A DNA stretch of 64,000 nucleotides from Oculina patagonica (GCF_052425735.1 NC_135768.1:16678001-16742000), one strand, 5' to 3'. Counted from the first letter of the stretch, positions 3,909-64,000 are shown. Notes: a model not told the origin generated them from the sequence alone. A program made the numbers and translations.

Positions 3909-4757
3909 CTAGTTGTCCTCTATCTGTTTCCACAACATCTGCCTTGCTGTCTTTACAACTGCTGTTCGAAGCTCGCGAAGACGCCAGCAATACAAAAATG
4001 GATTGATGGACGAGTTCATAAACGCTATAGTATCAGTAAAGTACCAAGCGCTTGTCCACTGACGAGGGGGGATAAATAAAATTGTAACAACAAATGGGGT
4101 ATAACACATAATCATCACCGTGTAATATATGAAAGTGCTTTTGGCACATTTAGTCGATCGCTGAATGTGTTGATTGTTTTCAGTAGACAAATTTTCCACA
4201 GCTTGTTGTTGAGCGTGAATTTGTAACTGATGATGCCTAACAATTCGATAGATTTGGATATAACAAACAGTGGAAATTAAAAGGCAGATACTCATTCCAC
4301 AACCCATAGCAAGATAATAAGCATCCATTTTCCAAAAGGAAAATAATGACAGCAGAAAGCTTAAGAACCAAAGCACTGCTAAAGTATATATAGCGCGCTT
4401 GGTGGTTATCAAATCCGGATATCGCATGTGATAATGAAGAGCCAAGAACCGATCCGCACTTATGGCTGTTATTGTAGAAAGCGAAGCACCACATACAGTC
4501 GTCGTGGTCAACGTTTTGTACACGGAACCGGTTTTTGTTAGTTGATAGGCTATGAAAACCGGTTGTACGACAAGTCCAACAAGAAGATCCGAAACAGCCA
4601 AGCTGGAGAGCAAAAACATGGACGGTGAACGAAGCGAAGGAGTTCTTAAAATGGCGGCTAGAACCAGAGTGTTGCCAATAATAGATATGATCATCAGTGT
4701 AGCATTCAGGACACAGTTTATGATGACAATAGTTTCAGGATGAGAAATGTTGCCCAT
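3909..4757 (-). CDS. Intronless class A GPCR (cluster family), 282 aa
   Basis: 7 hydrophobic segments; GN, LAVSD, DRF, CYTP, NPFLY; short in-frame deletions in TM3 and TM6 relative to the 42759 paralog. Confidence 0.9.
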   Translation of the reverse strand: MGNISHPETIVIINCVLNATLMIISIIGNTLVLAAILRTPSLRSPSMFLLSSLAVSDLLVGLVVQPVFIAYQLTKTGSVYKTLTTTTVCGASLSTITAISADRFLALHYHMRYPDLITTKRAIYTLAVLWFLSFLLSLFSFWKMDAYYLAMGCGMSICLLISTVCYIQIYRIVRHHQLQIHAQQQAVENLSTENNQHIQRSTKCAKSTFIYYTVMIMCYTPFVVTILFIPPRQWTSAWYFTDTIAFMNSSINPFLYCWRLRELRTAVVKTARQMLWKQIEDN

Positions 4758-6193
4758 ATTGCCGGAAAAATCCGCCTCTCAGTGACTCGTTCGCTGTCTT
4801 CGGAAAGATTAATTTAAGTTTATTTTCGAATGAAATAAACTCACTTTGCAAAGAATTATTGTTTGTTTAATTTGTGCCATTGAATATATGAATGTTGACA
4901 AAACAGTATGGTGCACGATAACAGATGTTTGAATTCAAGAAATCGATCTTTCGCCTTATAAGGTTATTTAAACAGTCTTGACCATTCTTGTTTATTTTAT
5001 TAGGTTTATTATTTGTTTTTTGGTATTTTTCTACCATAGAAAACTATTGCGAATCGGTCTTTTTCAATTTAAAAGTAATTGTGTACCTCCCAAAAATGAC
5101 TGATAACTTTCCTTATATGTTTATTCTACTTTATTAACGGAACAGAAGGTAGCCACACTGCATGTGCAAAACAAAATATTAGAGCGTGTCTTTCTATTAA
5201 TAATAAAAGCTACCAAATAAGCATAGGCTGTGCTGTCGATGTTCTTAAACACATTTAGCGAGATCTGTTTGACATTAAAATCACTCGTGACCAATAAAAG
5301 TTAAAAACATGTTAGACCGCCTTGCAATTCCGTTTCTGATTTAATTAAATCATACTTTTACTCATTACAAGTAAACTATTTATATTAAACTAGAACAAAC
5401 CAAAAAAAGAAGTTATTCTAAAGAGGAAGTTATTCGAAATTTATTGACGTTTGAGCATGGAAGACGGAAAATTTAATTTAAAACAAGTCACAATTCAAAA
5501 CAAAATCGTATACTGAAGTTATTTCATTGTAGAACCAGGTCAAGGTTGTGTGAGCCTTATTTGAATATTTTAATTGTTAAATATAATAATCAGCTGGGCT
5601 TATACCAAGGAAATATAAATTTCAGTTATTGCTACACGATGTGATTAAATACAAGACCGAACACTCTAGCTAATAGTAAGCAGGACGATTAGAGCTGTCG
5701 TTTGTCATGTGACAAACTTTTCCTTTTTCATTTTAATGGGGGTTGTAAGCAGAGATAACATTCTTCTTAAATGAGGAAAAAAGTTGACTTCAGAGTTTCC
5801 AGTTCACAAAATCTCCATTTTTTCCCCATAAGTACACTTATCCTAAGATTGTTTTTCCTTCTTCAGTGCAAACATTCAAAACAAATGGTCACAACATTCT
5901 TGTGGTTTGTAGGTCTTTAACACTGCGAACCTAGAAAATTTGTTTTTAGATTGCATGAAATCTCGAAGTAAACTTGTAGAAAAAAACGCTAAAAAACACA
6001 CACACACATAGATTGCGTTCACTTATACAGAACTAAGGGGAAAAATTTTCACGGTGTAACCAACGTCACGCGAGCTTTCCATCGAAATAAATCAGCTAAC
6101 GATAAATTGTGGTAGTTGAAAAGCTTCCAGATCAAAAGATTTTGGAAAACGTTTAAAATACGTTTTTTAGTTTCTGCTAAAACCGTAAATACA

Positions 6194-6827
6194 CTAGCTT
6201 TCCTCCGTTTGTTTACATAACATTTGCTTTGCTGTTGCAGATTCTGATTATTTTCTGCCTTTAAACGTCATTGTTGAGCGTCAATTTGAAGCTGATGTTG
6301 ACGAACAATCCGAAAGTTTCTAATGTTACAAACAGCTGAAATTGGTAGGAGAATAACAATACCAAGAGCTTTGGTAAAATAATAGATATTCATGCTCCAA
6401 AATGTTAAGAATGATTGATAGCTAACGAACCAAAGAGTTGCTGATGTATACTGAAATGGAACGCTTTGTAGTCATTAAATTCGGATACCCAATGTGATAA
6501 TGAAGAGCCAAGAACTGATCCACAGTTTTGGCTGTCATCGTTTAGAACGAAACACCACATGAAGCAAAGGATGCACTGGACATTGCCCGGTTTAGCAAAC
6601 TGTTTTGCGTTAATTCACGAGTTAGCTATGTAATCGGGTTGTACGACAAGTCCAACGAGAAGGCCCGAAACAGTCAATTTGCAGAACAAAATTATGGACG
6701 GTGAACGAAGCGAAGGAGTTCTCAATATGGCCAGAGTGTTGCCAATAATGGATATGAGCATCAATGGAGCATTTAGGACACAGTTTGTGAAAACAATAGT
6801 TTCAGGACAATGCTCCCTTTTGCCCAT
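6194..6827 (-). pseudogene. GPCR pseudogene (frameshifts/stops, TM6-TM7 deleted)
   Basis: MGKREHCPETIVFTNCVLNAPLMLISIIGNT start, stop after QPDYIANS, degenerate DRF block, ICL3 joined directly to the CKQTEES* tail. Confidence 0.85.
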
Positions 6828-6886
6828 ATCGCCTAAATTGTTAATTTCTGATTGGTTTGCCCCCTCATGTTTGAAGAAGTGAAAGT

Positions 6887-6920
6887 GGATGGATGGATGG
6901 ATGGATGGAAGGATGGATAG
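6887..6920. repeat. (GGAT)n microsatellite
   Basis: GTGGATGGATGGATGGATGGATGGAAGGATGGATAG. Confidence 0.9.
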
Positions 6921-6930
6921 CTGAAATATT

Positions 6931-7520
6931 AATAATAGTAGCTTATTGGAAAAGGTATAAGCATTCATGTTCCAAAAAAGTTACAAATACTGGATTTAAG
7001 CTCGTAAATAAGCCAAAGAGTCGCTGATGTGTACATTACCCGATATGTAGTTGTTGCAGTTTAAAATAAATTTCATGTCTAAACTATTTCAAACTAGTTT
7101 GGTTCGTTTTTTTCTTTGTTTAAGCATTATGGCACTAAATGTGGAAGAAGAAAGATACAAATTAAACTAAATTAACTAATTAAATTTGCTAAGTGTATGA
7201 CACATTAAACGACTATTGTATTGTATTGTATTGTAAATCTTTTTAACCTGAAATTCATTTCTAAACTACAATATAGTCATCAAATTCGCGGATATCGCAC
7301 GTAAACGCCACAAATAGAAAACCATTGCCTGGTTCAGCGAACTGTTTTCAGTACTTTAACTGCGTAGGTTAACTAGTTTACATACCTAACATACAACAAG
7401 CGGTTCTGACATAACTAAATAAATTGCAAAGCAAATCAGGTGGAAAGTGAACTAAACGCCAGAAAAGTTCTCAAAGGGGCGGCTAGCCTAAAATGATCTG
7501 GCAATGTTGGAGATAAGCAT
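6931..7520 (-). pseudogene. Highly degraded GPCR relic interrupted by about 220 bp of unrelated sequence
   Basis: AGCCAAAGAGTCGCTGATGTGTACAT (TM4 start) and GTCATCAAATTC..GGATATCGCA (ICL2) remnants; same relic occurs at 35880 and 63340. Confidence 0.65.
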
Positions 7521-7681: not shown

Positions 7682-8524
7682 CTAACAAAACACCTGCCTT
7701 GCTGTCTTTAAAACTGCCGTTTGAAGATCATGAAGACGCCAACAATACAAAATTGGATTGATGACCGAGTTCATAAATGCGACAGTGTGTGCTAAGGTCC
7801 ACGCAATTGTCCAGCGATAGCGGGAAATGGCTAAAATTGACATGGAAGCAAATAACGGGGTATAACACAATATCATAACGATATAATATATACAAGTGAT
7901 TTTAGCACTTTCAGTCAGTCGCAACATGTTCTGTTTAATATTTGCAGCATTAGTTTCCACAGCCTGATGTTGAACATGAATTTGTAACTGATGCACTCTA
8001 ACAATCCGATAGATTCGCACGTAACAAAAAGTACAAGTTAAAAGGCAAATGATAATGCCAAAAGCTGCAGCAAAAAAATAAGCACTCTTTTCCCAAAGGA
8101 ACAGCAATGATAACAGAAAGCTAATTAACCAAATAGTTGCTGATGTATACAGAGCGCGATGTGTAGTCATCAAATTCGGATATCGCATGTGATAATGAAG
8201 AGCCAAGAACCGATCCACAGTTATGGCTGTCATCATAAGAAGTGAAACACCACATCGTAACGCGGCCATTATGAACAATACTTGGAAAAGCAATTCATTT
8301 TCGGTGAGCTGATGAGCAATGTTAGCCGGTTGTAGGATAAGCCCAACAAAAAGATCCGATACAGCCAGACTGCAGAGCCAAATTATAGACGGCGAGTGAA
8401 GCGACGGTGTTCTCATTATGGAAGCTATCACCAGAGTGTTTTCAAATATAGATATCAGCATCAATAAAGCATTTAGTATACAGTTTATGATAACAACAGT
8501 ATCAGGAGGAGAATTACTGCCCAT
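7682..8524 (-). CDS. Intronless class A GPCR, FEN subtype, 280 aa (tail shortened by an AAG>TAG change)
   Basis: All 7 TM motifs; TM1 reads FEN instead of IGN; the sequence after the stop still encodes QGRESSFV*, resembling the QRVENSFT* tail of paralogs. Confidence 0.88.
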   Translation of the reverse strand: MGSNSPPDTVVIINCILNALLMLISIFENTLVIASIMRTPSLHSPSIIWLCSLAVSDLFVGLILQPANIAHQLTENELLFQVLFIMAALRCGVSLLMMTAITVDRFLALHYHMRYPNLMTTHRALYTSATIWLISFLLSLLFLWEKSAYFFAAAFGIIICLLTCTFCYVRIYRIVRVHQLQIHVQHQAVETNAANIKQNMLRLTESAKITCIYYIVMILCYTPLFASMSILAISRYRWTIAWTLAHTVAFMNSVINPILYCWRLHDLQTAVLKTARQVFC

Positions 8525-9642: not shown

Positions 9643-9678
<36 letters not shown>

Positions 9679-14256: not shown

Positions 14257-15405
14257 ATGAACTCAAGCCTACCAATCCAGACTGGCACGATTCCCTTCAG
14301 ATGTCACAATGACGATTTCATGGTTGGGATTCCACAGCAGTTTTCCACACACGCCTACAGTGTGATGGTCTTGAACATCGTCATCCTTGTTGTGTCCTGT
14401 CCTTTTACCATTGTACTAATAAACGTGCTGACGATGGTCGCCGTGAAGATCAAGGCGCGACTGCAAAGCATGTCCAACATAGCGCTGGCATGCTTGGCGG
14501 CCACTGATGTGATGGTCGGAATCATTGTCCAACCAGTTCAAATGGCTCTTGTAATTACAGTACTACAAGGGGAAGATACAAGCCATGTTTGTCGATTGCG
14601 AAATGTCTTGAAATATTTGATTAACTTTTTTAGTTTTTCGTCACTTGCCCACTTGGTGCTTATGAATGCAGATCGGTACATGGCTATCAAACAAAGCTAC
14701 AGTTATGATCAAATTGTCACCAAAGCTCGAGTACTGATTGCGTCTGCCATTGCGTGGATCTTAACTGCCATCCTACTTATTTTTCTTTCCGTCGACCATA
14801 ACCTATTTTTTTCTATCCAAAATTCACTCGCAGTTATATTTATGTTGTTAATTGCAATCAACAGTGCAGTGGTTTATAGTGAGGCTCGCCGACATGAAAG
14901 ACAAATAGCAGCTCAACAAGTATCAGTGGAAGCCAGAGAAAGGTTTTTAAAGGAAAAGCGAGCCCTAAAACTGACCACGACTATTGTTGTAATAGTGTTT
15001 CTAAGTTATCTGCCCATAATTAGTGTGAGAATAATCAGGAACGTTCTTAAAGACAAAGTCTCCATAGACACAATATATGCATTTTATTTCTCTGCTGCGT
15101 CTTCAGTAGTTATTAACTCTCTTATTAACCCACTCATTTATACTGTCAGATTAAGGCAGTTCCGTGTTGCATTTATCGAGTTACTTTTGAAGAAAAACCA
15201 CGCTCAAGCTGAAGAACTTGAAAAGAATATTTTTGGATCACTGAATGCTGCGCCCAACTTTACCAATCAGGGAGGAGAGACAGGGGAGCAAAATGTCAAC
15301 CAAGTGAATGCTATCATTGACGTTGAAACATACCAGGGAGCAGAGAGAGAGGAGCACAATGTCAACTCAGTGAATGCTGTTTCTGACATTGAAACAATCA
15401 TCTAG
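14257..15405 (+). CDS. Intronless class A GPCR of a different family, 382 aa, with a repetitive acidic C-tail
   Basis: 7 TM; LAATD, ADRY, SYLP, NSLINPLIY; longer N-terminus beginning with an N-S-S sequon; long uninterrupted ORF. Confidence 0.92.
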   Translation: MNSSLPIQTGTIPFRCHNDDFMVGIPQQFSTHAYSVMVLNIVILVVSCPFTIVLINVLTMVAVKIKARLQSMSNIALACLAATDVMVGIIVQPVQMALVITVLQGEDTSHVCRLRNVLKYLINFFSFSSLAHLVLMNADRYMAIKQSYSYDQIVTKARVLIASAIAWILTAILLIFLSVDHNLFFSIQNSLAVIFMLLIAINSAVVYSEARRHERQIAAQQVSVEARERFLKEKRALKLTTTIVVIVFLSYLPIISVRIIRNVLKDKVSIDTIYAFYFSAASSVVINSLINPLIYTVRLRQFRVAFIELLLKKNHAQAEELEKNIFGSLNAAPNFTNQGGETGEQNVNQVNAIIDVETYQGAEREEHNVNSVNAVSDIETII

Positions 15406-16789: not shown

Positions 16790-16997
16790 GTTTCATACTA
16801 TGTCGAAGGCAACTGAAGGTTGCCGAAAATTAAGAGGTTGTTTCTGTAATTCCGGTCTGGTCAATCTGGCTTGTACAATAGATTTCGCTCATTTCTTGTG
16901 TGCTGCAAGACTTTCATGTACTTATACTAAAACCACAATTTACTTGACCGGATCATTCATTTTCTTCGAGTTTTAAAACATTTTCGGTTCACCCGAA

Positions 16998-17161
16998 CGA
17001 GAAGAAGTTCTCAATATGGCGGCTAGCACCAGAGTGTTGCCGATAATGGATATGAGCATCAATGGAGCATTCAAGACACAGTTTATGATATCAAAATTGT
17101 CAGGACGAGAGTCACTTTTGTCCGTATTGCTTGATTTGTTTATTTCTGGTTGGCTTTCCAT
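16998..17161 (-). pseudogene. GPCR 5' fragment (N-terminus and TM1 only)
   Basis: MESQPEINKSSNTDKSDSRPD..INCVLNAPLMLISIIGNTLVLAAILRTS, after which homology ends. Confidence 0.85.
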
Positions 17162-17451
17162 CCTCGCGTTCCCTCAACAGTCCATATGTACAGTTAAATA
17201 CCGTTTGACATTTCCGTTTTAGCAAGTATTGGGTAATCAATTACAAGCGTTTGGTGTCCAGGTCTGTGTCGTGTTACATCGTGTTCCATCGCTTTTCGTT
17301 GCAACCAGGACGCGTCAGATAACAATTGGCTGTTTGGCTTTATACAAAGTATTCCTCACAGAGATACAATGATACAATGAAGGAAATGAAAACACCTGAT
17401 TTTGTTTCATCTAAAAATATATTTATTTTTTGTATTTACAAATTTTCAACG

Positions 17452-40733: not shown

Positions 40734-40835
40734 AAGATAATAAAAATAGTATACTGATCATTGCGACAAGGTTTAAAAAATAAACGATCTTTATATTGTG
40801 CCCAATCGTAGTTTTCCAGTTCAGTTTATAAAAAA

Positions 40836-41135: not shown

Positions 41136-41174
41136 TAGGGGAAAAAAACTAGCCAACATAAGCGATCACCTTGA

Positions 41175-41250
41175 AACCAAAGAACGAGAGAACCAGAGAA
41201 TCAGAGAACCAGAGAACCAAGAGAGCCGGAGAATCAAAGAATCAGAAAAC
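41175..41250. repeat. Short AGAGAACC/AGAGAATC 8-mer tandem repeat
   Basis: GAGAGAACCAGAGAATCAGAGAACCAGAGAACCAAGAG; a reverse-strand version lies near 58070-58135. Confidence 0.7.
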
Positions 41251-46016: not shown

Positions 46017-46130
46017 GGAAAACGAAGCAGAAACTGATTTTCTCAAAAATGTTGGTCGAAATAGGACTCGTTCTAAAACTATTGGCATAATAAACTGTGT
46101 ACTAAATGCATCAGTGATGCTCATATCCGT
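46017..46130 (+). pseudogene. GPCR 5' relic (leader and start of TM1)
   Basis: AACGAAGCAGAAACTGATT..AAACTATTGGCATAATAAACTGTGTACTAAATGCATCAGTGATGCTCATATCC. Confidence 0.7.
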
Positions 46131-46947: not shown

Positions 46948-48360
46948 ATGGGCGATAATTGTCGTCCTGAAACTATTGGCATCATAAACTGTGTAGTGAA
47001 TGCTCCATTCATGGTCATATCCATTATTGGCAACACTCTGGTGCTAGCCGCCATATTAACTCTATTCAGACCGGGGGGGGGGGGGCTTTTGAGGCCCGCG
47101 CTGACTTTGAACTTTTATAACTTTTTTAAGATTTAACCAAACGCTGCCAGACATTCTGAGTTTTCCTAAAATTTATCTGGCAACAATTTGGTAGAGTTGG
47201 ATGATGTGTCAGGAACTTGACATCACCATGCCAACGGCATTTTGACAGGCATGTTTTCCCAAATTTGTAATTTTGCGTGTTTCTGTTAATAAAAATCGAC
47301 TTAAATGGAATTATTTTTACATTTTTACGGGTTTAAAACACATTTTTTTTTATTTTGAGTACTTTGCAGTGATTTTGGGTGGTTTTCTGGCATTTTGGAA
47401 AAATTTTGAAATCCAAGATGACGGATCCAAGATGGCGGCTGTTTTGACATCATGATGTAATTGTCACGTGATGTGACGTCACCATCCCACTTGACGTATA
47501 CCAAAAGAAAGAGTTTCGGACATACAATACATCCTATAAGTTTCATGGTGATTGCTTAAATATTCTGGAAGTTACATGGGGGGGGGGCTTCCGAAGCCCC
47601 CCCGGTCTGAGAAGGTCCAAAAAAGCCCAGTCTGAATAGGGTTAAGAACTCCTTCGCTACGTTCACCGTCCATAATTTTTCTCTGCAGTTTGGCCGTTTC
47701 AGCAGCCGGTTTACATTGCTACTAGACTAACGGGAGATCGTTCCCTGTATCTGGCACTGTCCGTATTGGCCTTTTCTCCATGTGGTGTTTCACTCTTTAT
47801 AATGGCAAGCATAAGTGTCGATCAGTTCTTGGCTCCTTATTATCACATGCGATATCCGAACTTGATAACTGCCAAACGTACTATATATACATCAGCAGTT
47901 CTTTGGTTTATTTGCTTCCTGTTATCACTCATATATTTTTGGAAAAGCAATGCTTATTACTTAGGTTTGGCTGTTAGTATTGTCATTTGCCTCTTAACTT
48001 GTACCGTTTGTTGCATCCCATATATCAGATTGTCAGAAAGCATCAGTTACAAATTCATGCCCAACGAGAGGTTGTGGAAAGTAATCAAAACGTGCAGCGA
48101 TCGACTAAAAGTGCCCTAAATACTTTTATATATTATCTCGTGATGGTTCTGTGTTATACTCCATTATTTATTTCCATGTTACGTTCGGCTATTTTTCCTA
48201 ATCACTGGACAAACACTTTGATCTTAGCAGATACTGCAGCATTTATGAACTCGTCCATCAATCCATTTTTGTATTGCTGGCGCCTTCGCGAGCTTCGAAC
48301 GGCCTTTACCAAGTTAAGACTGCAATGAAAATGTTATGTAAAGAAACGGAAGAAAACTAG
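46948..48360 (+). pseudogene. GPCR pseudogene disrupted by a MITE after TM1, plus a TM2 deletion, DQF and a frameshift
   Basis: VLAAIL | insertion | RTPSLRSPS continuity across 47060-47641; remainder in ORFs 47766 and 47987. Confidence 0.92.
47060..47641. mobile_element. piggyBac-like MITE with TTAA TSD
   Basis: TTAA 47056-47059 and 47642-47645; ends CTCTATTCAGAC / GTCTGAATAGGG; removing it restores the GPCR reading frame at that site. Confidence 0.92.
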
Positions 48361-48446
48361 ACAACCTTCCTGAGTACAAACTATTAAGGAATTTAATAAA
48401 GTTTTTCCCGCCTGAGCTAACAAGGAAATTTGGTCATTTTTACATG

Positions 48447-48733
48447 AGGCTGTGGAAAGTTTCGATGCTGAAAATAACCACAACATGAAGCAATGAAAAA
48501 GAAAAGCCATAAATACTTTTATATATTATATCAAAATGATTCTATACTATACTCTGTTATTTATGTCAATGTCAATTGTAGCTATTTTCCCTAATCAGTG
48601 GACACGCGTGGGCGCTAGGAGAGACTGCGTCGTCCTATTTTTGTATTGCTGGCGTCTTCACGAGCTTGGAACTTTAACGGTAGTTGTAAATACAGCAAAC
48701 TAGATGTTATGTAACCAAATCGAGGACAGCTAA
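48447..48733 (+). pseudogene. GPCR 3' fragment (ICL3-TM7-tail)
   Basis: AGGCTGTGGAAAGTTT..AATACTTTTATATATTATATC..TTTTTGTATTGCTGGCGTCTTC with stops and deletions. Confidence 0.82.
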
Positions 48734-50036: not shown

Positions 50037-50891
50037 ATGGGAAATAATTCTCGTCCTGATACTATTGTTATCATAAACTGCGCACTGAATGTACCTCTGA
50101 TGCTCATATCCATTATTGGAAACACTCTGGTGCTAGCAGTCTTATTGAGAACTCCTTCGCTTCGTTCACCGTCCATTGTGTTCTTATGCAGTCTGGCTGT
50201 ATCAGACCTTCTAGTTGGACTTATCGTACAACCGGTTTACATTGCTCGCGTATTCACCGCTGATTCGCTGTTCAAGATAAGTGATACTGTAGCTTTTGCT
50301 GCATGTGGTGTTTCGCTCTTAACAATGGCGGCCATCAGTGTGGATCGGTTCTTGGCTCTTCATTATCACATGCGGTATCCGAACGTAATGACAACATATC
50401 GTGCTATGTATATATCGGCAATTCTTTGGTTGGTCAGCTTTCTGCTGTCTTTTTTACCGTTTTGGAACATGAATGTTTATTATTTTGTCGTAGCCTTTTG
50501 TATAGTCGTTTGTCTTTTACTGTCCTCTATTTGTTACATCAGAATTTATCGAATAGTTCGTCAGCATCAGTTACAAATTCACGTTCAACAACTGGTCGTG
50601 GGACGTTTAAACACTGAAAATAGTCAGAACATGCAGCGATCGACGAAAAGTGCCAAAAACACATTTATATATTACACTGTGATGATTCTGTGTTATACCC
50701 CAGTGTTTATTGCCATGTCGATTATAGTTATCTCGCCTCATCACTGGACAAAAGCTTGGGACTTTACTGATACTGTAGCATTTATGAACTCCTCCATTAA
50801 TCAATTTTTGTATTGCTGGTGTCTTCGTGAGCTTCGAACGGCAGTTTCAAAGACAGTAAAGATGTTTTGTAAACATGCAGAGGAAAACTAA
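50037..50891 (+). CDS. Intronless class A GPCR, 284 aa, with NPxxY altered to NQFLY
   Basis: Complete ORF; closest to 39841 and 58545; P7.50>Q and WR>WC. Confidence 0.85.
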   Translation: MGNNSRPDTIVIINCALNVPLMLISIIGNTLVLAVLLRTPSLRSPSIVFLCSLAVSDLLVGLIVQPVYIARVFTADSLFKISDTVAFAACGVSLLTMAAISVDRFLALHYHMRYPNVMTTYRAMYISAILWLVSFLLSFLPFWNMNVYYFVVAFCIVVCLLLSSICYIRIYRIVRQHQLQIHVQQLVVGRLNTENSQNMQRSTKSAKNTFIYYTVMILCYTPVFIAMSIIVISPHHWTKAWDFTDTVAFMNSSINQFLYCWCLRELRTAVSKTVKMFCKHAEEN

Positions 50892-52651
50892 AGGTAATGA
50901 AAACAGCATACTGACCATTATTGCAGAGGAAAGGCCAAGGCAACATTTGAAAAATAATAAAAGATAAAAATGGCCCAACTGTAGAAGCTTTCAAGTTTGG
51001 TAAACGAAAAAAAAAAAACTAGTCAGCATGATTCACTTGAAACTCGCTTCCATTTTATGAATCGTTGTCAAAAAGAATAATTACTACTTTACAGGATATC
51101 TAAGAAGACATAAATGCTGATCCAATGTGTTAAGTTGTTCAAAAACTTGTGGATATTAATTCTGCTCAAGGAAGTACTGACAAGCAATAATAAGTGATAA
51201 CGTTTAGTATTTTAGTTTATTTTTTTTATGATTCCTTTGCAAACTTCCTGAATGCTAAAATATCTTTCTTTTAATTTACGTTTGTCGCGCGTAGTTCACA
51301 TGCATGTTCAATTAAAAAACGTATCAACTGGTATCACCTGCAGATTTATTCTTTCTGACGATAGAATACTTGCTCTGCAGTCCTAGGCCTGTTGAGTAGA
51401 GGCTTGCAACGTGAGAAATTTCAGTAGAAAACTTGGCAAAATGCAAGGAAACTTGTCAAAAACCTGCCATGATAACCAAAAACGAATTTTTCAGTGCAAA
51501 ACAAATATTAGACCGGCAAAAATCGTTCTCATTGGCTGAATTTTACTTATTGGCCCTCTCAGCTGTCGCAGTAGTGAAATAATCCTCGGCTTATTTGCAT
51601 AATTTTAAAAGTGATAAACGGCGAAAAACGCGCACATTCCCGCAAATATGTAAAAAACGAAAGTAACAACCAGCTTATCGAATAAAGCTTTGTAAGAAGA
51701 AAATTGGAGGCAGTGCGGTTAAACTATATAATATCAAGGTAAACTAAATTGCGTAAACCCAATAAGATTGGAGAGTCTTGTTATTAATACATGTCTATAC
51801 ACTAGAATCCCAATATCTTTAAACTCCACGGAAACAAGTGCAAAAATTGATTCTATAAATCGAGGGTAGAACTACAGTGTTAAAGAGGGAATGAGTGGAC
51901 CCTAGTTGTTATTACCATTTCCCGCGAGAAGTTCCTTGAGGGCTAAGGCATTTCAGAAACAATACAAACAACGCGATTGGAGTCTGGTTCCCATTACCAG
52001 GTCCCCCGTGATCCTTGAGGGGCGAGGCATCATTTCATAAACGATATAGATAACCAGACGAGTGGACTCTGGTTGTCATTACCAGGACTCCAATAAAACA
52101 CCTTTTGAGTGGTGTGGAATAACGAAACAAAATATTGCTCAGCAGGTGAATATGAAGAGAAAATGTCAAAAATTAGTCATGAAAGCCAATTATACAAAAA
52201 AGCGAACACAACTTAGCAAATTATCTCAGACGAGTCTCACTTTTAAAAACGTTTCGTTAAGGTATATTGAATAGATCTTTCCGATTAAAAGGTTTCAATC
52301 GTATGCGAACCATAAAATCATGTCAAAATGCATTTGGCATAAGAAGGCTTTCTTACTAGTTACACAGCCAACAGTTATTGATAGTCGAAACATTTGAAAA
52401 CATATGTCGCGTAGGCCTCTTTGTCTTACATTTAATTTTTGACTTTGACAGGCAGAAAGGTAATTTGAGACTTGTGCAAGATTTAATTTAATATATTTCT
52501 TGGGATATTGCATTGATTTTAGCAAAACATCTTTACATCTTTTTGGCCAAACTCTCAACAACACCGTGCTCAGCAACACCGTGCAACATTTCAAATCGTA
52601 CGATTGCGTGGGAAGATTGCAAACGAATAAGAAACGGACTACTTGGGGAAT

Positions 52652-53503
52652 ATGAGCAATAATTCTTATCCTGAAACTATTGTCATCACAAATGGAATAC
52701 TAAATGCGCCACTGATGCTCGTATCCATTATTGGCAACACTCTGGTGCTAGCTGCCATATTGAGAACTCCTTCGCTTCGTTCATCATCCATGATTTTACT
52801 TTGCAGTTTGGCTGTGTCAGACCTTCTAGTTGGGTTTGTCGTACAACCGCTTTACATTGCTTATAGACTAAAGGAAAATGGATCTAATGGTTCCCTGTAT
52901 CAAGCACTGACAAAAACGTCCTTATCTGCGTGCGGCGTTTCGCTTATGACAATGACAGTCATAAGTGTGGATCGGTTTTTGGCTCTTCATTATCACATGC
53001 GATATCAGAATTTGATGACTACCTTTCGTGCTTCATGTACATCAACAACCCTTTGGATCATAAGCTTTCTGTAATCACTCTTTTCTTTGTGGAAAACGAG
53101 TGTTTATTATTTTGCTATAGCGGCCACTATTATTATTTGCGTTTTAATTTCTACTGTTTGTTACATCAAAAATTATCGAATAGTTCGTCAGCATCAGTTG
53201 CAAATTCACGCCCAACAACAGGCTGTGGGAAGTTTAAACGCTGAAAACAATGAGAACATGCAACGATCGACCAAAAGTGCTAAAAACACTTTTATATATT
53301 ACATCTTGATGATTCTGTTTTATATGCCGGTGTTTATTGCAATGGCAATTTTATTTATTTCCCCCAATCACTGGACACATGCGTGGGCATTAGCAGAGAC
53401 TATAGCATTTATGAACTCGTCCATTAATCCATTTTTGTATTGCTGGCGCCTTCGCGAACTTCGAACGGAAGTCATCAAGACAGCAAGAAAGATGTTATGT
53501 TAA
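52652..53503 (+). pseudogene. GPCR with an in-frame stop in TM4 (TAA 53072-53074) and an early tail stop
   Basis: ORFs 52643 and 53087 are in the same frame; also RYP>RYQ and CYTP>FYMP. Confidence 0.88.
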
Positions 53504-54485
53504 CAGACAGAAGAAAGCTAGTCAACGTTGCGTTTTACGCAAGGCAGGTCGATGCTTCTTGGTTATGATACAAGCGACATTTAAATGGCTGATTAAGGTC
53601 TCTGAAATTAATCTTCGAAATTTTAAATTAGAACACAATTTAACTTTGACTGATTTAATCAGATGTTGGTTTGTTAAGTGTCACGTGATATACGGGAGGT
53701 GTAGGTAGCAAAAAAAAAAGAAGAAGATTGGCGCTTAAATTCAAGTTAGGGCTTAAATTCCCTTAACACAGTAAAGGCAAAATGCACAGTTAATTACCCA
53801 CTTTTTTAAATGCGGTGAAGGACAAGTTTAACCTGTCAAGATAAATGAAAATTTCATAATTCTCACACGGCGTTGAACCAGATCCCGTAATGCTTCCCAA
53901 AACACATACCTCTCAATAGGGACCGATAAATCCTGGGTTCATGCGATCGTGCATGCAAATATGGCGACAGAATGGACGAGTTGCCATGGAGCCTGGTTTC
54001 TCGTACCCAGGTCTCTTAAAACATTGTGCGTGAGGTGTGCCACCATTTCATAAACATTCTCGACTGCAGTGAACTAAAGAAAAAACGTCAAAAAATAGTC
54101 ATAGACACATCTCTAAAAGGGGACGATTGGAAAGTTTTTTATCGTATGTAATCCATTTCTATGTCAAATGTATTCGGCTAAACTAGTTTTTTTAATAGTT
54201 CATAAATGCAGGTGGTAGTTATCGATAATGAAAACATATGAAAACAGATGTTGCTTGCAAATTACGCATGTCCTTTTGTCCTTTTGAGAAACATTTAATT
54301 TATATCTTTGACATACAGCAAGCTACTTTGAAATGAAAGTAATAGAAAAATTTTAGACCTCTCAAGCTATCGTATTGAATTTATGCGTCCATCTATTTGC
54401 GAACAACACCTTGCTACAAGGTGGAAACGCATAGTGAAAGTGCTCGAAGGTAACAAATTTACCAGAAACCGAATACTCAGGTAAA

Positions 54486-55343
54486 ATGGGCAATAATTCT
54501 TGTCCTGAAACGATTGTTATCATCAACTGTGCGCTGAATACGCCATTGATGCTTATATCCATTATTGGCAACACTCTAGTGCTAGCCGCCATATTGAGAA
54601 CTCCTTCGCTTCGTTCACCGTCCATAACTTTTCTTTGCAGTCTAGCTGTTTCAGACCTTCTTGTTGGACTACTCGTGCAACCGATTTATATCGCGAATGA
54701 ACTTACAAATGATTTGCTGTACAACATAAGAAACGCTACGGCTTTTTTTGCGTGTGCTGTTTCGCTCTGTACAATAACAGCCATAAGTGTGGATCGGTTC
54801 TTGGCTCTTCATTATCACATGCGATATCCGAATTTGATGACTACACGTCGTGCTGTGTATATATCAGCAACTCTTTGGGTTATCAGCTTCCTGCTTTCAT
54901 TTTTAACTTTTTGGAACACGAGCGCTTATGGTTTCGCCGGAGCAGTTAGTATCGTCATTTGCCTTTTAATTACCACTGTTTGCTACATCAGAATCTACCG
55001 GATTGTTCGTCAGCATCAAATACAGATTCATGTTCAACAACAGGCTGTGGACAGTATAAATGCTGAAAATAATCAGAACATGCAGCAGTCGAAAAAAAGT
55101 GCTATAAATACTTTTATATATTATATTGTGATGGTCCTATGTTATACACCGTTGATTATTTTAATGACAATGTTAGGTCTGCCAAACATTCACTTAACAA
55201 CGTCGTGGATCTTCGCAGATACGGTGGCATTTATGAACTCGGCAATCAATCCCTTTTTGTATTGCTGGCGTTTTCGGGAGCTCCGAACGGCAGTTTTAAA
55301 CGCAGCGAGGGAAATGTTATGCAGAGAAACGCCAGAAAACTAG
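54486..55343 (+). CDS. Intronless class A GPCR (cluster family), 285 aa
   Basis: All motifs intact. Confidence 0.92.
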   Translation: MGNNSCPETIVIINCALNTPLMLISIIGNTLVLAAILRTPSLRSPSITFLCSLAVSDLLVGLLVQPIYIANELTNDLLYNIRNATAFFACAVSLCTITAISVDRFLALHYHMRYPNLMTTRRAVYISATLWVISFLLSFLTFWNTSAYGFAGAVSIVICLLITTVCYIRIYRIVRQHQIQIHVQQQAVDSINAENNQNMQQSKKSAINTFIYYIVMVLCYTPLIILMTMLGLPNIHLTTSWIFADTVAFMNSAINPFLYCWRFRELRTAVLNAAREMLCRETPEN

Positions 55344-58544: not shown

Positions 58545-59438
58545 TTAGTTTTCCTCTGCCTGTTTACAAGACACCTCCTTTACTGTCTTTGAAACTGCCG
58601 TTCGAAGCTCACGAAGACGCCAGCAATACAAAAATGGATTGATGGACGAGTTCATAAATGCTACAGTGTCAGTTAAGTTCCAAGCGCGTCTCCAGTGATG
58701 AGGCATGATAACTAAAATGGACATGGAAATAAACACCGGGGTATAACACAGAATCATCACAGCGTAATATATAAATGTGTTTTTGGCATTTTTCATCGAT
58801 CGATGCATGTTCTGATTATTTTCAGCATTTAAACTTTCCACAGCCTGTTGTTGAACGTGAATTTGCAACTGATGACGACGAACTATTTGATAAATTCTGA
58901 TGTAACAAACAGTAGAAAGTAGAAGGCAAACGATTATACTTAAGGCTATTACCAAATAGAAAACATCCAAGCCCCAAAAAGGTAAAAAAGACATCAGAAA
59001 GTTGACCAACCAAAGAGTTGCTGATATATACATTGCACGGTGTGTAGTCATCAGCATCGGATATTTCATGTGATAATGAAGAGCCAAGAACCGATCCACA
59101 CTTATGGCTGTTATTGTAGAAAGCGAAACACCACATGCAGCAAAGGCTACAGTATCACCTATCTTGTCCAGAAAATCAGCGGTGAATAAGCGACCAATGT
59201 AAACTGGTTGTACGACTAGGCCAACTAAAAGGTCTGATACAGCCAGGCTACATAAGAACACAATGGATGGTGAACGTAAAGAAGGAGTTCTCAATATGGT
59301 GGCTAGCACCAGAGAGTTGCCAATAATGGATATGGGCATCAGTGGAGCATTCAGTGCGCAGTTTATGATGACAATCGTTTCAGGACGAAAATTATTGCCC
59401 GTACTGCCGGAATTATAAGTCGCTGTTAAGTTTGTCAT
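58545..59438 (-). CDS. Intronless class A GPCR (cluster family), 297 aa from the ATG
   Basis: All motifs intact; ATG at 59438 (MTNLTATYNSG); inverted paralog of 39841. Confidence 0.92.
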   Translation of the reverse strand: MTNLTATYNSGSTGNNFRPETIVIINCALNAPLMPISIIGNSLVLATILRTPSLRSPSIVFLCSLAVSDLLVGLVVQPVYIGRLFTADFLDKIGDTVAFAACGVSLSTITAISVDRFLALHYHMKYPMLMTTHRAMYISATLWLVNFLMSFLPFWGLDVFYLVIALSIIVCLLLSTVCYIRIYQIVRRHQLQIHVQQQAVESLNAENNQNMHRSMKNAKNTFIYYAVMILCYTPVFISMSILVIMPHHWRRAWNLTDTVAFMNSSINPFLYCWRLRELRTAVSKTVKEVSCKQAEEN

Positions 59439-61165: not shown

Positions 61166-61845
61166 CTAGTTTTCTTCCGTCTGTTTGAATAACATCTGCT
61201 TCGCTGTCTTAACAACGGCCGCTCGAAGCTCACGTATACGCCAACAATACAAAAATGGGTTGATGGACGAGTTCATAAATGCCACAGTATCGGCAAAATT
61301 CCACGCGCTTTTCCAGCGATTACGACAAACAACCAAAATTGACATGGTAATAAACAACGGTGCATAACATAGGATCATCACTATATGATATATAAAAGTG
61401 TTAATAGCACTTTTTTCGATCGCTGCATATTCTGATTATGTTCAGCATTTAAACATCCAACTGCCTGTTGTTGAACCTGAATTTGCAACTGATGAAGACG
61501 GACAATTCGATAAATTTTGATGTAAGAAATAGTAGAAACTAAACTAAACTGAAAATGCCATTGCATGTACCGTCTGATACAGTGAACGATTTCCCGTTAC
61601 TTCGTAAGTGATCCACAGCGGTTGCACGAGAAACCCAACGAGAAGGTCTGACACAGCCAAACTGCATAGCAAAACTGTGAACGGTGAACGAAGCGATGGA
61701 GTTCGCAATATGGCGGCCAGCACCAGAGTGTTGCCAATAATTGATATGGCTCATTTAGGACACAGTTAATGATGACAATAGTTTTAGGACGAAAGTCACT
61801 TTTGCCCATATCGCTTGAATTGTCAATTTGTGATTGGTTTGCCAT
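61166..61845 (-). pseudogene. GPCR pseudogene (TM3-TM5 deleted, frameshifts); inverted paralog of 37365
   Basis: MANQSQIDNSSDMGKSDF start; GCATTTTCAGTTT joined directly to TM5, apparently via a TTTCAGTTT microhomology; 3' end intact. Confidence 0.9.
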
Positions 61846-63102
61846 CTTCGCGTTCTCTCTCTTACGTTTAAAGTAACGAACCTTCTTTTTGGTGCAATAG
61901 TCGATTTGCACAGCTCTATAATGTTGTGTCAACTTGAAAAATATGTTTATCGCAATTTTCGGCTGCCTGTCACATAAACAGTTGAAGTGATCGATGATTC
62001 AAGTCCCAAAGAGGCTTACATAACTAGCAAGCTATATCGAAGGATCTGAGTGTCGATTACCTCCGTATTTAGAAACAAGAAAGGAAGAAACATCTCTTCA
62101 GCGACGTACAGCTGGATTTGTGTTTACATAGCGGCGTTGTCCACCACGCGGTGGCTAATTTTTGGTGTATTCGATTTTCATTTGGAAAAAATGAAGGGAG
62201 CTGGTATACTTGCGCAAGAGAAAAGATTTGAGCAGCATGACTCTTAGAAAGTGATCAGCAAATTATTTTTTCTATAAAAAGAGAAATTAATTAGCCAGCT
62301 GTGAAGATACCCTTTCTTTTAAAAATACAGCATAATAATAAATGCTAATAAATGCTGCACATTGAACGCATTTGGGAAAATTCGAATTTTAACGCCGAGA
62401 ACAAGTTGTTTTTTTTGGACTAAGCAGCTTCCTTTGGTATGCCACTTCCATTACTTGTCATTGTCAAACAATATCCTTAATTTGTCGTCAGCCCCATTTT
62501 CAAACCAAAATATAACGTTTCGTGCTGTTGTCGTAACTTTTTATTGCTCTCCCTTAAGATTCTCTTGCCTAGTTTTGTTTTGTTTTCTTGGATTTTCATG
62601 GCATGACATCTCACCCAATAAGGACCTTCTTAGCTTGAGAGATGTGGGAATGAGAACCCAGTTTATTCTAGTCTGTTCTCTTACCATGGTTACGCATGCT
62701 GGTATTGAAGAAATAATAAAATAAATCATTAGGTTGAAATAAGAAGTGTTAGAGATACGACTTATAAAATATATGTCTAATAAACGCTTAACGGCTGAAT
62801 CTTTTCGTGACATCATGGCTTTCGGTCTTATAGTTGTTGAAGTGAAACAAGTGATGAAACGTTTTGAAACATTTTTGAACGGTGGAGGGCAACTAAATTA
62901 AAATAAGGTATCACCCACTTTGCATTAATATTTGTACAGTTTTTTTTTGCTTAGTTAATAGTTTTAATTAGGTTTTTTAAATGTATATAAATATTTTCTA
63001 TTTTATATATATTAATTACGTTCTTAGTTAGGCAGGTTAGGTGTCCACAATTAGTAGAGGGGACTTTTCCCCTCAGCTACTACAGTTTGACACGATAATA
63101 AA

Positions 63103-63103
<1 letters not shown>

Positions 63104-63139
<36 letters not shown>
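63104..63139. repeat. (ATT)n microsatellite
   Basis: About 11-12 TTA units. Confidence 0.95.
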
Positions 63140-63339
63140 GATGTTGTAGGGCTTTTTAACTTATCATTTAAGTTCTTACTTAGAAATCAATTCGGATAAG
63201 ACAGCAGATGAACAACGCTCTTGACTGCCACTTATAACGTTTTGTTCTGGCCTTCTTATGATAAGGTCCATAGTTTGTCCATGATTCGCAACCTTTTTTA
63301 TTTGGTAAATTAAACAGTAATATAAATAACAAAAAATGA

Positions 63340-63680
63340 CAGCTAATTGGAAAAGTTATAAGAATTCAGATTCCAAAAAAGTTACAAATGCTAGTATCAA
63401 GCTAATAAGTAAGCCAAAGAATCGCTGAACATTGTGTACATTACGCGATTTGGGGTCATCAAATTCGGATATCATATGTAATGATATTTATAGCGTAAAG
63501 AACGCCACATACTGTCGCGTTGCCTTGTTCAGCGAACTGTCTTTCGTATGACTTAAAGAAATGTTAAATGGTTGCAGAACAAGTCCAGCGAAGGGGTTCT
63601 GATAAATTGCAAAGCAAAGTTCTCAAACTGGCTGCATGCTAGCTCTAGAATGATGCCAGTATTGGAGATGACCATGAGCT
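63340..63680 (-). pseudogene. Degraded GPCR relic
   Basis: AGCCAAAGAATCGCTGA, GTCATCAAATTCGGATATCATATG and GGTTGCAGAACAAGTCCA remnants; mirror of 35880. Confidence 0.65.
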
Positions 63681-63749
63681 ACAAAAAATGGTTTTACGCA
63701 AATTTGGTTTTTAGTTTATGCCTAGGAGGATTGGCTTAAACCCCTACTC

Positions 63750-64000
63750 TTAAGTAAACGAATTTTCTACTCTTTGTTTACAAAACATCTGCCTAGCTGT
63801 CTTTACAACTGCCGTTCGAAGGTCACGAAAACGCCAACAATACAAAAGTGGATTGATAGCAGAGTTCATAAATGCTACAGTATCTGCTAAGGTCCATGCA
63901 ACTGTCCAGCGATTGCGGGACACAGCTAAAATTGACATGGAAGCAAATAACGGGGTATAACACAATATCATTACGATATAATATAAAAAAAGTGTTTTTA
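63750..64000 (-). pseudogene. 3' end of an FEN-subtype GPCR running off the window; apparent +1 frameshift in a T7 run
   Basis: MILCYTPLFASMSILAVSRNRWTVAWTLADTVAFMNSAINPLLYCWR..QRVENSFT*; near 63990 the frame is one base off from the KNTFIYY consensus, which could be a sequencing error. Confidence 0.6.

Follow-up and report, generated by a model that had tools for sequence, protein, structure and literature searches.

A tandem array of stripped-down, single-coding-exon class A GPCR genes in the stony coral Oculina patagonica, a candidate chemosensory repertoire

Introduction

What kind of receptors are encoded by the closely packed, look-alike genes found in a 64-kb stretch of the genome of the stony coral Oculina patagonica (CM126645.1:16,678,001-16,742,000; hereafter the window), and what could they serve for? 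A sequence-only reading of this stretch had described them as a birth-and-death array of orphan G protein-coupled receptors (GPCRs) resembling a chemoreceptor repertoire. Here we examine the gene content of the window, the anatomy and variation of the predicted receptors, their relatives, and the explanations that compete with a chemosensory role.

Results

Gene content of the window

The window covers one part of a longer tandem array, built of class A GPCR genes with a single coding exon each. The list of open reading frames and a tblastn self-scan identified 10 open single-exon copies of one family, encoding 280-335 aa, together with 9 disrupted copies, and the self-scan added 5 short relics; these counts match the roughly 20 genes, 10 complete ORFs, about 9 disrupted copies and several relics proposed beforehand. 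The 19 family copies per 64 kb are accompanied by more on either side, as the array extends past both window edges, and 28% of the window is GPCR-homologous DNA. Self-scan and relatives also agree with the description of a lineage-expanded orphan class A family whose tandemly arranged copies include many pseudogenes. The term "intronless" was correct for the main coding exon, but the NCBI model of one copy has an upstream coding micro-exon of 6 nt. A search upstream of the intact copies revealed no element common to them, and exact-sequence look-ups of the copies gave matches in the genome assembly only. The features are listed below in window coordinates.

3909..4757, minus strand: intact family GPCR, 282 aa, annotated P0033 (ORF list, self-scan); a mosaic, its 5' third nearest to the 31416/P0001 group and the remainder nearest to the 42759 copy
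6208..6887, minus strand: pseudogene with at least 2 frameshifts and 2 stops, lacking the C-terminal third (self-scan)
7682..8524, minus strand: intact family GPCR, 280 aa, sister group of the 23300 copy (ORF list, tree)
14257..15405, plus strand: an additional class A GPCR of 382 aa, orphan, divergent and unrelated-looking, which shares 25% identity with the array family; Cys3.25, an N-terminal Cys and DRY are retained, ECL1 is longer, and Y6.48 is present
16952..17167, minus strand: relic, N-terminal ~55 codons of a family copy (self-scan)
20839..21708, minus strand: intact family GPCR, 289 aa, P0042
23300..24169, minus strand: intact family GPCR, 289 aa, P0085
27233..28042, minus strand: pseudogene, degenerate in its central part and interrupted by 2 in-frame stops (self-scan); dN/dS against the nearest intact copies ~0.5
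28487..28588, plus strand: relic, N-terminal ~33 codons (self-scan)
29391..30248, plus strand: intact family GPCR, 285 aa, P0023
31416..32258, plus strand: intact family GPCR, 280 aa (ORF list), our reference for residue numbering, structure model and searches; P0001, 1.7 kb past the window end, is 90% identical to it
33600..42780, no strand: one arm of an inverted segmental duplication, paired with ~56554-64600
33602..34512, plus strand: pseudogene with 2 stops and 1 frameshift, sister of the 63753 copy; it opens the three-gene block that was duplicated in inverted orientation (self-scan, tree)
35945..36052, plus strand: relic, ICL2/TM4 codons with 1 stop (self-scan)
37329..38261, plus strand: copy with a single nonsense TAA at 37986-37988, sister of the 61169 copy; dN/dS 0.35, similar to that of intact copies; a young pseudogene or null allele
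39805..40730, plus strand: copy whose frame is broken once, by a frameshift near 40354-40359; it pairs with the 58545 copy as its sister; branch dN/dS 0.37; likewise a young pseudogene or null allele
42759..43766, plus strand: intact family GPCR, 335 aa, with a 37-residue C-terminal extension and the ancestral long N-terminus MVNLTETNYSG...
46060..47058, plus strand: two N-terminal relics, 46060-46131 and 46903-47058, the second with a stop (self-scan)
47642..48730, plus strand: pseudogene with several frameshifts, lacking the first ~50 codons (self-scan); a second partial C-terminal copy lies at 48443-48724
50037..50891, plus strand: open ORF, 284 aa, P0013, with NQFLY for NPFLY (Pro7.50 lost), alone in this among 119 aligned kin, and CWC for CWR; although its frame is intact, the receptor may be dead
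52589..53518, plus strand: pseudogene with 3 in-frame stops and 0 frameshifts (self-scan)
54486..55343, plus strand: intact family GPCR, 285 aa counted from an internal Met; in-frame upstream sequence is homologous to the long N-terminus, its ATG lost; NCBI model P0044 (299 aa) splices the 6-nt micro-exon 53663-53668 to 54447
58545..59438, minus strand: intact family GPCR, P0012, 297 aa, whose N-terminus is of the long type (MTNLTATYNSG); of the six genes that make up the two three-gene blocks it alone survives
61169..61881, minus strand: pseudogene with frameshifts and a ~75-codon internal deletion (self-scan, tree)
63753..64000, minus strand: C-terminal part of a pseudogene crossing the window end; in the full copy (L003:4777-5690) TM3 is shortened by an internal deletion and TM6 carries a frameshift

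Duplication, exchange and decay

The array has grown by tandem and block duplication at the DNA level. The two arms of the inverted duplication are 80-84% identical over kilobase-scale stretches that include intergenic DNA, three sister pairs of the DNA tree (33602/63753, 37329/61169 and 39805/58545) fit the inverted block, and subsets of copies share flanks of 0.5-3.4 kb. In the duplicated blocks, five genes out of six have died, and about half of all copies (9/19) have decayed. Birth-and-death evolution, as proposed, is seen in both its duplicates and its decay, with exchange between copies in addition: nearest neighbours change along single genes, which are mosaics, and silent-site divergence falls to 0.115-0.26 in three cytoplasmic blocks, two- to four-fold below the rest (0.48), whereas the equally conserved TM2 and TM6 controls stand at 0.51-0.63. 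We infer that the cytoplasmic face (DRF/ICL2, ICL1 and TM7/helix 8) is uniform partly through gene conversion. The intracellular segments are indeed near-constant, as noted earlier, but part of this constancy is homogenisation at the nucleotide level and not protein-level selection alone.

Class and anatomy of the receptors

The family belongs to class A (rhodopsin-type) by its match to Pfam 7tm_1 (E 3e-35, 122 bits against a gathering cut-off of 30.5; 7tm_4 reached 27-33 bits, far under the 7tm_1 score), by its fold and by its microswitch residues. Motifs were checked on alignment A1 and on an AlphaFold2 model of the 31416 copy (pLDDT 82, pTM 0.78), which has seven helices plus helix 8 and a TM-score of ~0.8 against solved class A receptors. 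The reference residues are N29 (1.50), D57 (2.50), DRF 104-106, W132 (4.50), CYTP 217-220 (Y6.48) and NPFLY 253-257, and these 7TM motifs are invariant across the open copies, the NQFLY of 50037 excepted. With respect to class A the variant microswitches are F3.51 and Y6.48, so that the changes from DRY to DRF and from W6.48 to Tyr (CYTP) reported from the sequence are both present in the alignment.

The receptors are as minimal as had been claimed. The N-terminus measures 8-20 residues, helix 1 of the reference starting at residue 9; in the model ECL1 consists of 2 residues (75-76) and ECL2 of 1 (145), while ECL3 spans 231-239, and Tyr80 occupies position 3.25 in place of the Cys. Since N-terminus, ECL1 and ECL2 are minimal and the TM3-ECL2 disulfide is missing, the helical bundle of the predicted structure should be accessible from outside.

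In generic numbering, 119 kin carry at 3.25 mostly Tyr, His or Phe (Asp in 4), at 3.29 mostly Thr, Ser or Asn (Asp in 6), and at 3.32 Ala (90/119), Ser (17/119) or else Val, Thr or Gly, never Asp. Pro5.50 is absent, the residue in its place being Cys, Tyr or Phe, and 6.55 is Met in 94 of the 119, otherwise Ile, Val, Leu or Thr and never Asn. One side of the predicted cavity would be common to nearly all members, formed by Y6.48 (118/119), F6.52 (105/119), W7.35 (116/119), D/E7.39 (115/119) and F7.43 (114/119), a geometry given by generic numbering and the predicted model and not by coordinates of a complex.

Variation and selection

Entropy is higher in the outer half of the receptors than in the inner half (1.41 against 0.81 bits, p = 2e-9), pN is highest at residues 65-90, 140-160 and 220-240, and copy-to-copy differences lie at the tops of TM3 and TM5 and in TM6/ECL3. 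The contrast between a constant cytoplasmic face and a variable outer half is thus borne out by entropy and pN, but the centre of ICL3 (188-197) varies too; similarly, ECL3 is variable together with the top of TM6, whereas the top of TM7 (240-250), which had been included, is rather conserved. Variable sites were expected around the extracellular pocket. The outer half is enriched in them but the canonical pocket positions are not (1.39 against 1.27 bits for other outer-half helix positions, p = 0.56), and this comparison lends no support to the suggestion of many ligand pockets. As the pocket is not extra-variable, relaxed constraint rather than ligand tuning could explain the variability of the outer half.

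Moderate purifying selection acts on the intact copies, with a mean dN/dS of 0.33 at dS of 0.26-0.88; values near 1 everywhere, which would have spoken against the earlier reading, were not seen. No sizeable region had dN/dS >1, only segments of 1 to 5 codons exceeding this value.

Relatives and age

Several window copies have counterparts of ~90% identity among sequences not labelled O. patagonica, which implies that the array did not arise in a very recent burst; it mixes old subfamilies. Kin identity is ~70% in Orbicella, 44% in Acropora and 36% in Nematostella, so far as the closest relatives found are concerned, the Nematostella one being a lone gene in its 21-kb locus. Database relatives at E<=1e-10 numbered 3006, and the named ones within the best 120 are all coral. 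With members from Nematostella through corals, this is an orphan hexacorallian family, greatly expanded in stony corals. Logan contigs of an Orbicella relative lack poly(A) and follow the genome colinearly, and thus do not indicate transcription.

Discussion

Taken together, we consider it rather probable that these stripped-down, tandemly arrayed class A GPCRs constitute a set of receptors for diverse ligands with one transducer, chemical sensing being the likeliest role. Each gene would give rise to a 7TM receptor with nearly no N-terminus, ECL1 or ECL2. The copies would bind different diffusible ligands having a common, probably cationic, moiety, the variable top of TM3, top of TM5 and TM6/ECL3 differing per copy while the residues on one side of the cavity are shared, and all copies, with their uniform cytoplasmic face, would feed one transducer.

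A possible, though rather unlikely, alternative is that the array encodes receptors for endogenous neuropeptides or neuromodulators used in cell-to-cell signalling inside the coral, expanded like the hexacorallian peptide-receptor clusters of Nematostella. A cnidarian class A cluster with >100 Nematostella genes expanded late within Hexacorallia and includes low-sensitivity, promiscuous peptide receptors (Thiel et al., PMC11087051); the supplements of that paper, one of which was incomplete, gave no hit for short motifs from the nearest Nematostella relative. Peptides that contain Arg or are amidated would go well with the conserved acidic residue at 7.39, close counterparts of the subfamilies exist among sequences without an O. 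patagonica label, and many class A GPCRs are expressed in coral neurons (PMC8162421). However, peptide receptors usually possess a sizeable ECL2 and N-terminus, and the ECL2 of this family is a single residue; furthermore, a pseudogene load of ~50% with block duplications is unusual for endocrine or neuropeptide receptors.

We regard as improbable a role in innate immunity or symbiosis, in which the receptors would recognise microbes or dinoflagellate symbionts. The copy-number dynamics are akin to those of immune receptor families, but the array sequence holds no pointer to immune signalling, nor to the binding of large ligands because the receptors have no ectodomain. O. patagonica is a facultatively symbiotic coral, which we count against recognition of symbionts. 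Noel et al. proposed such a role for coral-amplified GPCRs generally, although this suggestion is speculative (PMC10236652).

Still a little less probable is that the locus reflects mostly evolutionary churn, that is, duplicates of an unstable locus that drift into pseudogenes, while hardly any copy, if any, has a distinct function. The 9 disrupted copies among 19, the five dead genes of six in the blocks, the open 50037 ORF without Pro7.50 and an outer-half variability not focused on pocket positions are all consistent with it; against it stand a dN/dS of 0.33 at dS up to 0.88, the 7TM motifs invariant in open copies, the fact that several copies have close counterparts in sequences without an O. 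patagonica label, and the retention of the family from Nematostella to corals.

Database names would make the genes genuine orthologues of the melanocortin, adenosine, histamine or beta-adrenergic receptors of vertebrates, a reading that is refuted at the residue level and can practically be discounted. The top PDB sequence matches were MC1R and MC3R (E 2e-19), with the beta-1 adrenoceptor and A2A close behind, but the E-values of melanocortin, aminergic and adenosine receptors are indistinguishable, at 21-28% identity. Melanocortin receptors (within the wider MECA group) share with the array the absence of a TM3-ECL2 disulfide and of Pro5.50, the very short ECL2 and the short N-terminus; the first three of these traits are common to other receptor groups as well and do not define the family alone. 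In MC1R, D117 and D121 at the top of TM3 bind ligand and Ca2+, whereas the family has Met or Leu and Ala there (Met83, Ala87; HMMER alignment), NPxxY (INPFLY) in place of DPxxY (IDPLIY), and Tyr in place of Trp6.48; its similarity to aminergic receptors is equal. An aminergic or TAAR identity (histamine H2, beta-adrenergic) fails for want of the Asp3.32 counter-ion in all 119 kin. In adenosine receptors Asn6.55 contacts adenine and a Phe of ECL2 stacks on it; neither Asn6.55 nor more than a one-residue ECL2 is present here. A vertebrate odorant receptor is equally rejected by the weak 7tm_4 score, the one-residue ECL2, and the TM3 and TM6 motifs ISVDRFLALHY and MILCYTP. With the equivalents of MC1R D117/D121, Asp3.32 and Asn6.55 missing, melanocortin, adenosine and histamine names therefore carry no information on the ligand, as had been anticipated for such labels. 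The Orbicella, Pocillopora and Acropora relatives bear the same automatic names as coral-amplified GPCRs, and a label of this type has been taken literally in at least one paper (PMC8484447).

Regarding the chemosensory reading that we favour, the array resembles the vertebrate OR/TAAR clusters in its single coding exons, dense tandem arrangement, many pseudogenes and birth-and-death evolution, and in variation concentrated in the outer portions of helices TM3-TM6. The Tyr6.48 of the family presumably matches the Tyr of the OR 'FYG' motif. Unlike ORs, it has no Cys3.25-ECL2 disulfide, a one-residue ECL2 in place of the long OR loop with its conserved cysteines, and neither MAYDRYVAIC nor KAFSTCxSH; unlike TAARs, it lacks Asp3.32. 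Clustered protocadherins are also built of single-exon tandem units in which some coding segments are homogenised, silent sites included, while recognition segments stay diverse, and regionally restricted gene conversion in their variable exons was reportedly described by Noonan et al. in 2004; they are, however, another protein class, whereas the array units are complete genes without shared constant exons. Also comparable are the sea-urchin 'surreal' GPCRs and the lophotrochozoan candidates, lineage-specific, clustered, single-exon class A receptors of marine invertebrates which are proposed as chemoreceptors on genomic grounds (PMC9897584, PMC11886862). These are independent expansions in other phyla, some with organ-specific expression.

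Corals are known to have many tandem arrays of rhodopsin-like GPCRs, and this array is of the same kind. According to Noel et al. (2023, Genome Biol 24:123, PMC10236652), the rhodopsin-like GPCR is the commonest domain of tandemly amplified coral orthogroups; such coral-amplified class A families arise largely by tandem duplication and differ in copy number between genera. The array has the rhodopsin-like domain, the tandem arrangement and the amplification relative to sea anemones. In the part consulted, that paper counts orthogroups and does not describe the anatomy, pseudogene load, block duplication, mosaicism or silent-site homogenisation of one array. In Stylophora, expression of many rhodopsin-type GPCRs has been reported for neuronal metacells (PMC8162421). 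Judged from its genes, the array is a plausible candidate for a chemosensory role in O. patagonica, where its likeliest use would be the sensing of external or tissue-borne chemical cues by neural or sensory cells.

Copy number, duplication and decay

The ORF list, together with a tblastn search of the window against its own ORFs, yielded ten open copies of the orphan class A GPCR family, nine disrupted copies and five short relics, which bears out the copy count of the sequence-only reading. Copies are named here by their start coordinate in the window.

Family copies in the window, from the ORF list and tblastn
Open, minus strand: 3909, 7682, 20839, 23300, 58545
Open, plus strand: 29391, 31416, 42759, 50037, 54486
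Disrupted, minus strand: 6208, 27233, 61169, 63753
Disrupted, plus strand: 33602, 37329, 39805, 47642, 52589

The 63753 copy is cut by the window end, and the flanking DNA revealed that its TM3 is affected by a deletion and its TM6 by a frameshift. Annotated proteins are identical to six of the ten open copies, and GPCR-homologous DNA makes up 28% of the window. The array extends past the window, since an intact family gene lies on either side (P0003, 4.3 kb before it, and P0001, 1.7 kb after it). The other ORFs between the genes of the window gave no Pfam match; one of them lies on the strand opposite to the 33602 pseudogene, shortly beyond the end of that copy at 34512:

34606-35451, minus strand, 281-aa ORF without a Pfam match

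Among protein-atlas clusters, those nearest to this ORF consist of hypothetical proteins from molluscs and cnidarians, and one set carries zf-CCHC; the ORF may be a gag-like remnant of a mobile element.

Subsets of copies have 0.5-3.4 kb of flanking DNA in common, implying that duplication occurred at the DNA level and ruling out retroposition as the copying route. In a DNA tree, the sister pairs 33602/63753, 37329/61169 and 39805/58545 were recovered with 99-100% support and at similar depths; their order and strands imply an inverted duplication of a block of three genes, now present as two blocks at about 33.6-42.8 kb and 64.6-56.5 kb. As these blocks are merely 80-84% identical, an artefact of assembly duplication was discarded. 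Five of their six genes are broken, two of them by a single lesion:

37986-37988, plus strand, nonsense TAA in the 37329 copy
40354-40359 (approximate), plus strand, frameshift in a T-rich stretch of the 39805 copy

The dN/dS values of these two copies (0.35 and 0.37, respectively) are the same as those of the open copies, which, together with the single lesion, implies that they are very young pseudogenes, segregating null alleles or assembly errors. One further copy has an intact frame and altered motifs:

50037-50891, plus strand, open 284-aa ORF in which NPxxY reads NQFLY

This replacement of Pro7.50 by Gln is the sole case among 119 aligned relatives, and helix 8 begins with CWC instead of CWR; the 50037 copy may be a non-functional receptor.

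Receptor anatomy

All copies tested matched Pfam 7tm_1 (E ~1e-33 to 1e-35). An AlphaFold2 model of the 31416 copy, our reference for residue numbering, was built from an alignment of 119 relatives (pLDDT 82, pTM 0.78) and predicted TM helices at residues 9-38, 45-74, 77-111, 121-144, 146-188, 194-230 and 240-260, with helix 8 at 262-277. According to these bounds, ECL1 would comprise two residues and ECL3 nine, and ECL2 would be a single residue. Residues that anchor the numbering are N29 (1.50), D57 (2.50), D104-R105-F106, W132 (4.50), C217-Y218-T219-P220 and N253-P254-F-L-Y257; Tyr80 occupies position 3.25, and Cys replaces Pro at 5.50.

Only the 42759 and 58545 copies keep a longer N-terminus, M(T/V)NLTxT(N)YSG. 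The remaining open copies begin at an internal Met, and upstream of several of these, most clearly 20839 and 54486, recognisable homologous sequence persists that is now untranslated. The homologous ancestral ATG is mutated in the 54486 copy, and the NCBI model of this copy (P0044, 299 aa) restores a start by means of an upstream coding exon:

53663-53668, plus strand, 6-nt micro-exon ATGTTG, spliced 0.8 kb downstream to 54447

Such a micro-exon may be an annotation device and not a real exon. The family had been described as intronless, and this holds for the main coding exon; because of the model of the 54486 copy, the term has to be limited to that exon.

The array also contains a divergent member of class A:

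14257-15405, plus strand, 382-aa orphan class A GPCR, 25% identical to the family

The N-terminus of this gene product contains a Cys, another Cys lies at about 3.25, ECL1 is longer, and the C-terminal tail is acidic and repeat-like. A longer ECL1, Cys at about 3.25 and an N-terminal Cys characterise distant relatives in general, including the Nematostella protein, and Tyr6.48 is kept in all of those compared. From these alignments, the 14257 gene appears to resemble the presumed ancestral form of the superfamily, and the longer ECL1 and the cysteines of the distant relatives make the coral array family look secondarily reduced from an older type of anthozoan receptor.

Comparison with named receptors

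The best PDB sequence matches were MC1R and MC3R (2e-19 to 6e-19), followed by the beta-1 adrenoceptor (7.5e-19) and A2A (8e-18), while fold searches ranked aminergic receptors, TAARs and MC1R together, with a TM-score of ~0.8 and 20-28% identity. None of these likenesses amounts to orthology. The aspartates 117 and 121 of MC1R align to Met and Ala, which excludes a melanocortin receptor, and where MC1R has DPLIY the coral family has NPFLY. None of the 119 relatives has Asp at 3.32 or Asn at 6.55, which excludes aminergic and adenosine receptors, respectively. Vertebrate ORs have motifs of their own and a long ECL2, both absent from the coral family. In databases this one family goes under four names ('melanocyte-stimulating hormone receptor-like', 'adenosine receptor A2b-like', 'histamine H2 receptor' and 'beta-2 adrenergic receptor-like'). 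The residue tests fail for each named family, in agreement with the earlier claim that automatic melanocortin- or adenosine-type labels are uninformative. One such label was taken as evidence for melanin production in a published study (PMC8484447); biological inference should not rest on the database names of array genes.

Variation, selection and exchange between copies

Pairwise Nei-Gojobori estimates for the ten open genes gave a mean dN of 0.21, a mean dS of 0.64 (range 0.26-0.88) and a mean dN/dS of 0.33. Non-synonymous changes peak at residues 65-90 (end of TM2, ECL1 and top of TM3), 140-160 (top of TM4, ECL2 and top of TM5) and 220-240 (top of TM6 and ECL3), with a short additional peak in the middle of ICL3. 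Regional dN/dS is 0.4-0.6, apart from stretches of one to five codons. Across the 119 aligned sequences, entropy averaged 1.41 bits in the outer half of the receptor versus 0.81 bits in the inner half (Mann-Whitney p = 2e-9); these values and the non-synonymous peaks agree with the proposal that the inside is constant and the outside variable. The cavity itself has a conserved side, formed by Y6.48 (118/119), F6.52 (105/119), W7.35 (116/119), D/E7.39 (115/119) and F7.43 (114/119), and a side that varies among the same relatives (2.64, 3.28, 3.29, 3.33, 4.60, 5.42, 5.43, 5.46 and 6.51). The sequence-only reading went further and proposed many ligand pockets. The 26 canonical pocket positions showed no excess variability over the remaining helix positions of the outer half (1.39 vs 1.27 bits, p = 0.56), and the variability pattern by itself would fit relaxed constraint as well as ligand tuning. 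Moreover, the mosaic structure of the copies would lead to false positives in tree-based site tests for positive selection.

This mosaic structure is apparent in 150-nt windows, along which the nearest paralog switches within single genes. The 5' third of the 3909 copy is nearest to the 31416/P0001 group and the remainder to the 42759 copy; similarly, P0003 matches 31416/P0001 at 91-95% identity across the alignment windows from 150 to 375, but from 375 to 825 its nearest copy is just 72-84% identical. Superimposed on it are three cytoplasmic blocks whose silent sites are nearly invariant, carried by paralogs otherwise at a dS of ~0.6.

Blocks with near-invariant silent sites, in codons of every copy, and silent-site divergence (pS) within Oculina
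29-46, end of TM1 and ICL1: 0.26
99-116 (29694-29734 of the window in one copy), DRF block, around D104-R105-F106 in TM3/ICL2: 0.115
246-268, end of TM7 and helix 8: 0.24

Outside the blocks the corresponding value is 0.48, and it reaches 0.51-0.63 in equally conserved segments of TM2 and TM6. Between Oculina and Orbicella, the divergence of the blocks is less reduced (0.28-0.42 vs 0.54). That the effect is stronger within the genome is as expected from regionally restricted gene conversion, which would account for most of the likeness. The reduction that remains in the blocks between species leaves room for constraint at the nucleotide level. The DRF block is partly conserved, in near-identical form, in Orbicella genes, but not in Nematostella. 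In our view, the silent-site likeness of these specific coding blocks is the most interesting loose end of the analysis.

Age, distribution and expression of the family

A protein tree was built from the ten window genes and 112 further rows (109 search relatives, two Orbicella proteins and an Acropora outgroup). No single clade unites the window genes, and several of them have close counterparts among sequences without an O. patagonica label, likely from other coral species: the 3909 copy is 90% identical to the relative P0094, and 29391 groups with P0114 with 98% support. This topology implies that the array consists of old subfamilies to which recent duplications have been added. Named relatives share ~70% identity with the window family in Orbicella faveolata, 51-64% in Pocillopora, ~44% in Acropora and ~36% in Nematostella, and in a whole-library search identity fell smoothly over 377 representative clusters (E<=1e-30). 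Relatives in Orbicella occur in tandem, with two to three genes within 7 kb adjoining a Forkhead-domain gene (L007:10001-13098 and L008:2975-9857), from which it follows that small arrays of the family exist in other robust corals. The nearest named Nematostella vectensis relative ('histamine H2 receptor', 36% identical) is a single-exon gene (L011:10001-10951, OW051990.1) located within a large ferlin gene and on its strand, with no array partners within 10 kb on either side; its short motifs were not found in the available part of the supplements to the paper on deorphanised peptide receptors (PMC11087051).

Upstream of the genes, flank similarity exists at the subfamily level only, and no 8-mer was common to more than six of the ten upstream regions, a result no better than shuffles; an exact motif considered as a shared promoter element occurred a single time. 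Exact-protein look-ups for four window genes returned the genome assembly (GCA_052425735.1) as sole match and put the window at about 16,678,001-16,742,000 of chromosome CM126645.1. Logan contigs of an Orbicella relative follow the genome colinearly, lack poly(A) and may be DNA-derived; their two ends agree between two runs, and a third run shares the start. Many rhodopsin-type GPCRs were reported to be expressed in coral neuronal metacells (Levy et al. 2021, PMC8162421).

Significance of the array

According to Noel et al. 2023 (PMC10236652), the rhodopsin-like GPCR is the commonest domain among coral-amplified orthogroups (34/192); those orthogroups are rich in tandem duplicates, a role in immunity or symbiosis is suggested and their function is said to need investigation. 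Thiel et al. 2024 (PMC11087051) report more than 1000 GPCR genes in Nematostella and late hexacorallian expansions. The array described here belongs to this published kind of coral GPCR tandem expansion, and by itself leaves existing knowledge unchanged, as the phenomenon is already on record. Judged by its sequence, the genomic behaviour of the array is chemoreceptor-like. This part of the chemoreceptor interpretation stands, as does the uninformative nature of the names, but that of many ligand pockets does not gain from pocket positions that are no more variable than their surroundings. We regard as a long shot the combined proposal that these loop-less minimal receptors are the long-sought exteroceptive chemoreceptors of stony corals, serving for example to detect prey, symbionts or settlement cues and showing sparse or exclusive expression in sensory neurons, and that the silent-invariant cytoplasmic blocks are not just conversion tracts, the DRF block being a family-wide functional nucleic-acid element, e.g. 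for receptor gene regulation or choice.

The molecular detection of settlement cues, food, partners and symbionts by corals is poorly known, and large arrays of orphan GPCRs are obvious candidates. The array represents a concrete and well-delimited set for expression and ligand screens, with ten open genes (of which 50037 may be inactive) in clear subfamilies, sharing a cavity floor with a conserved acidic residue at 7.39 and differing in the walls formed by TM3 and TM5.
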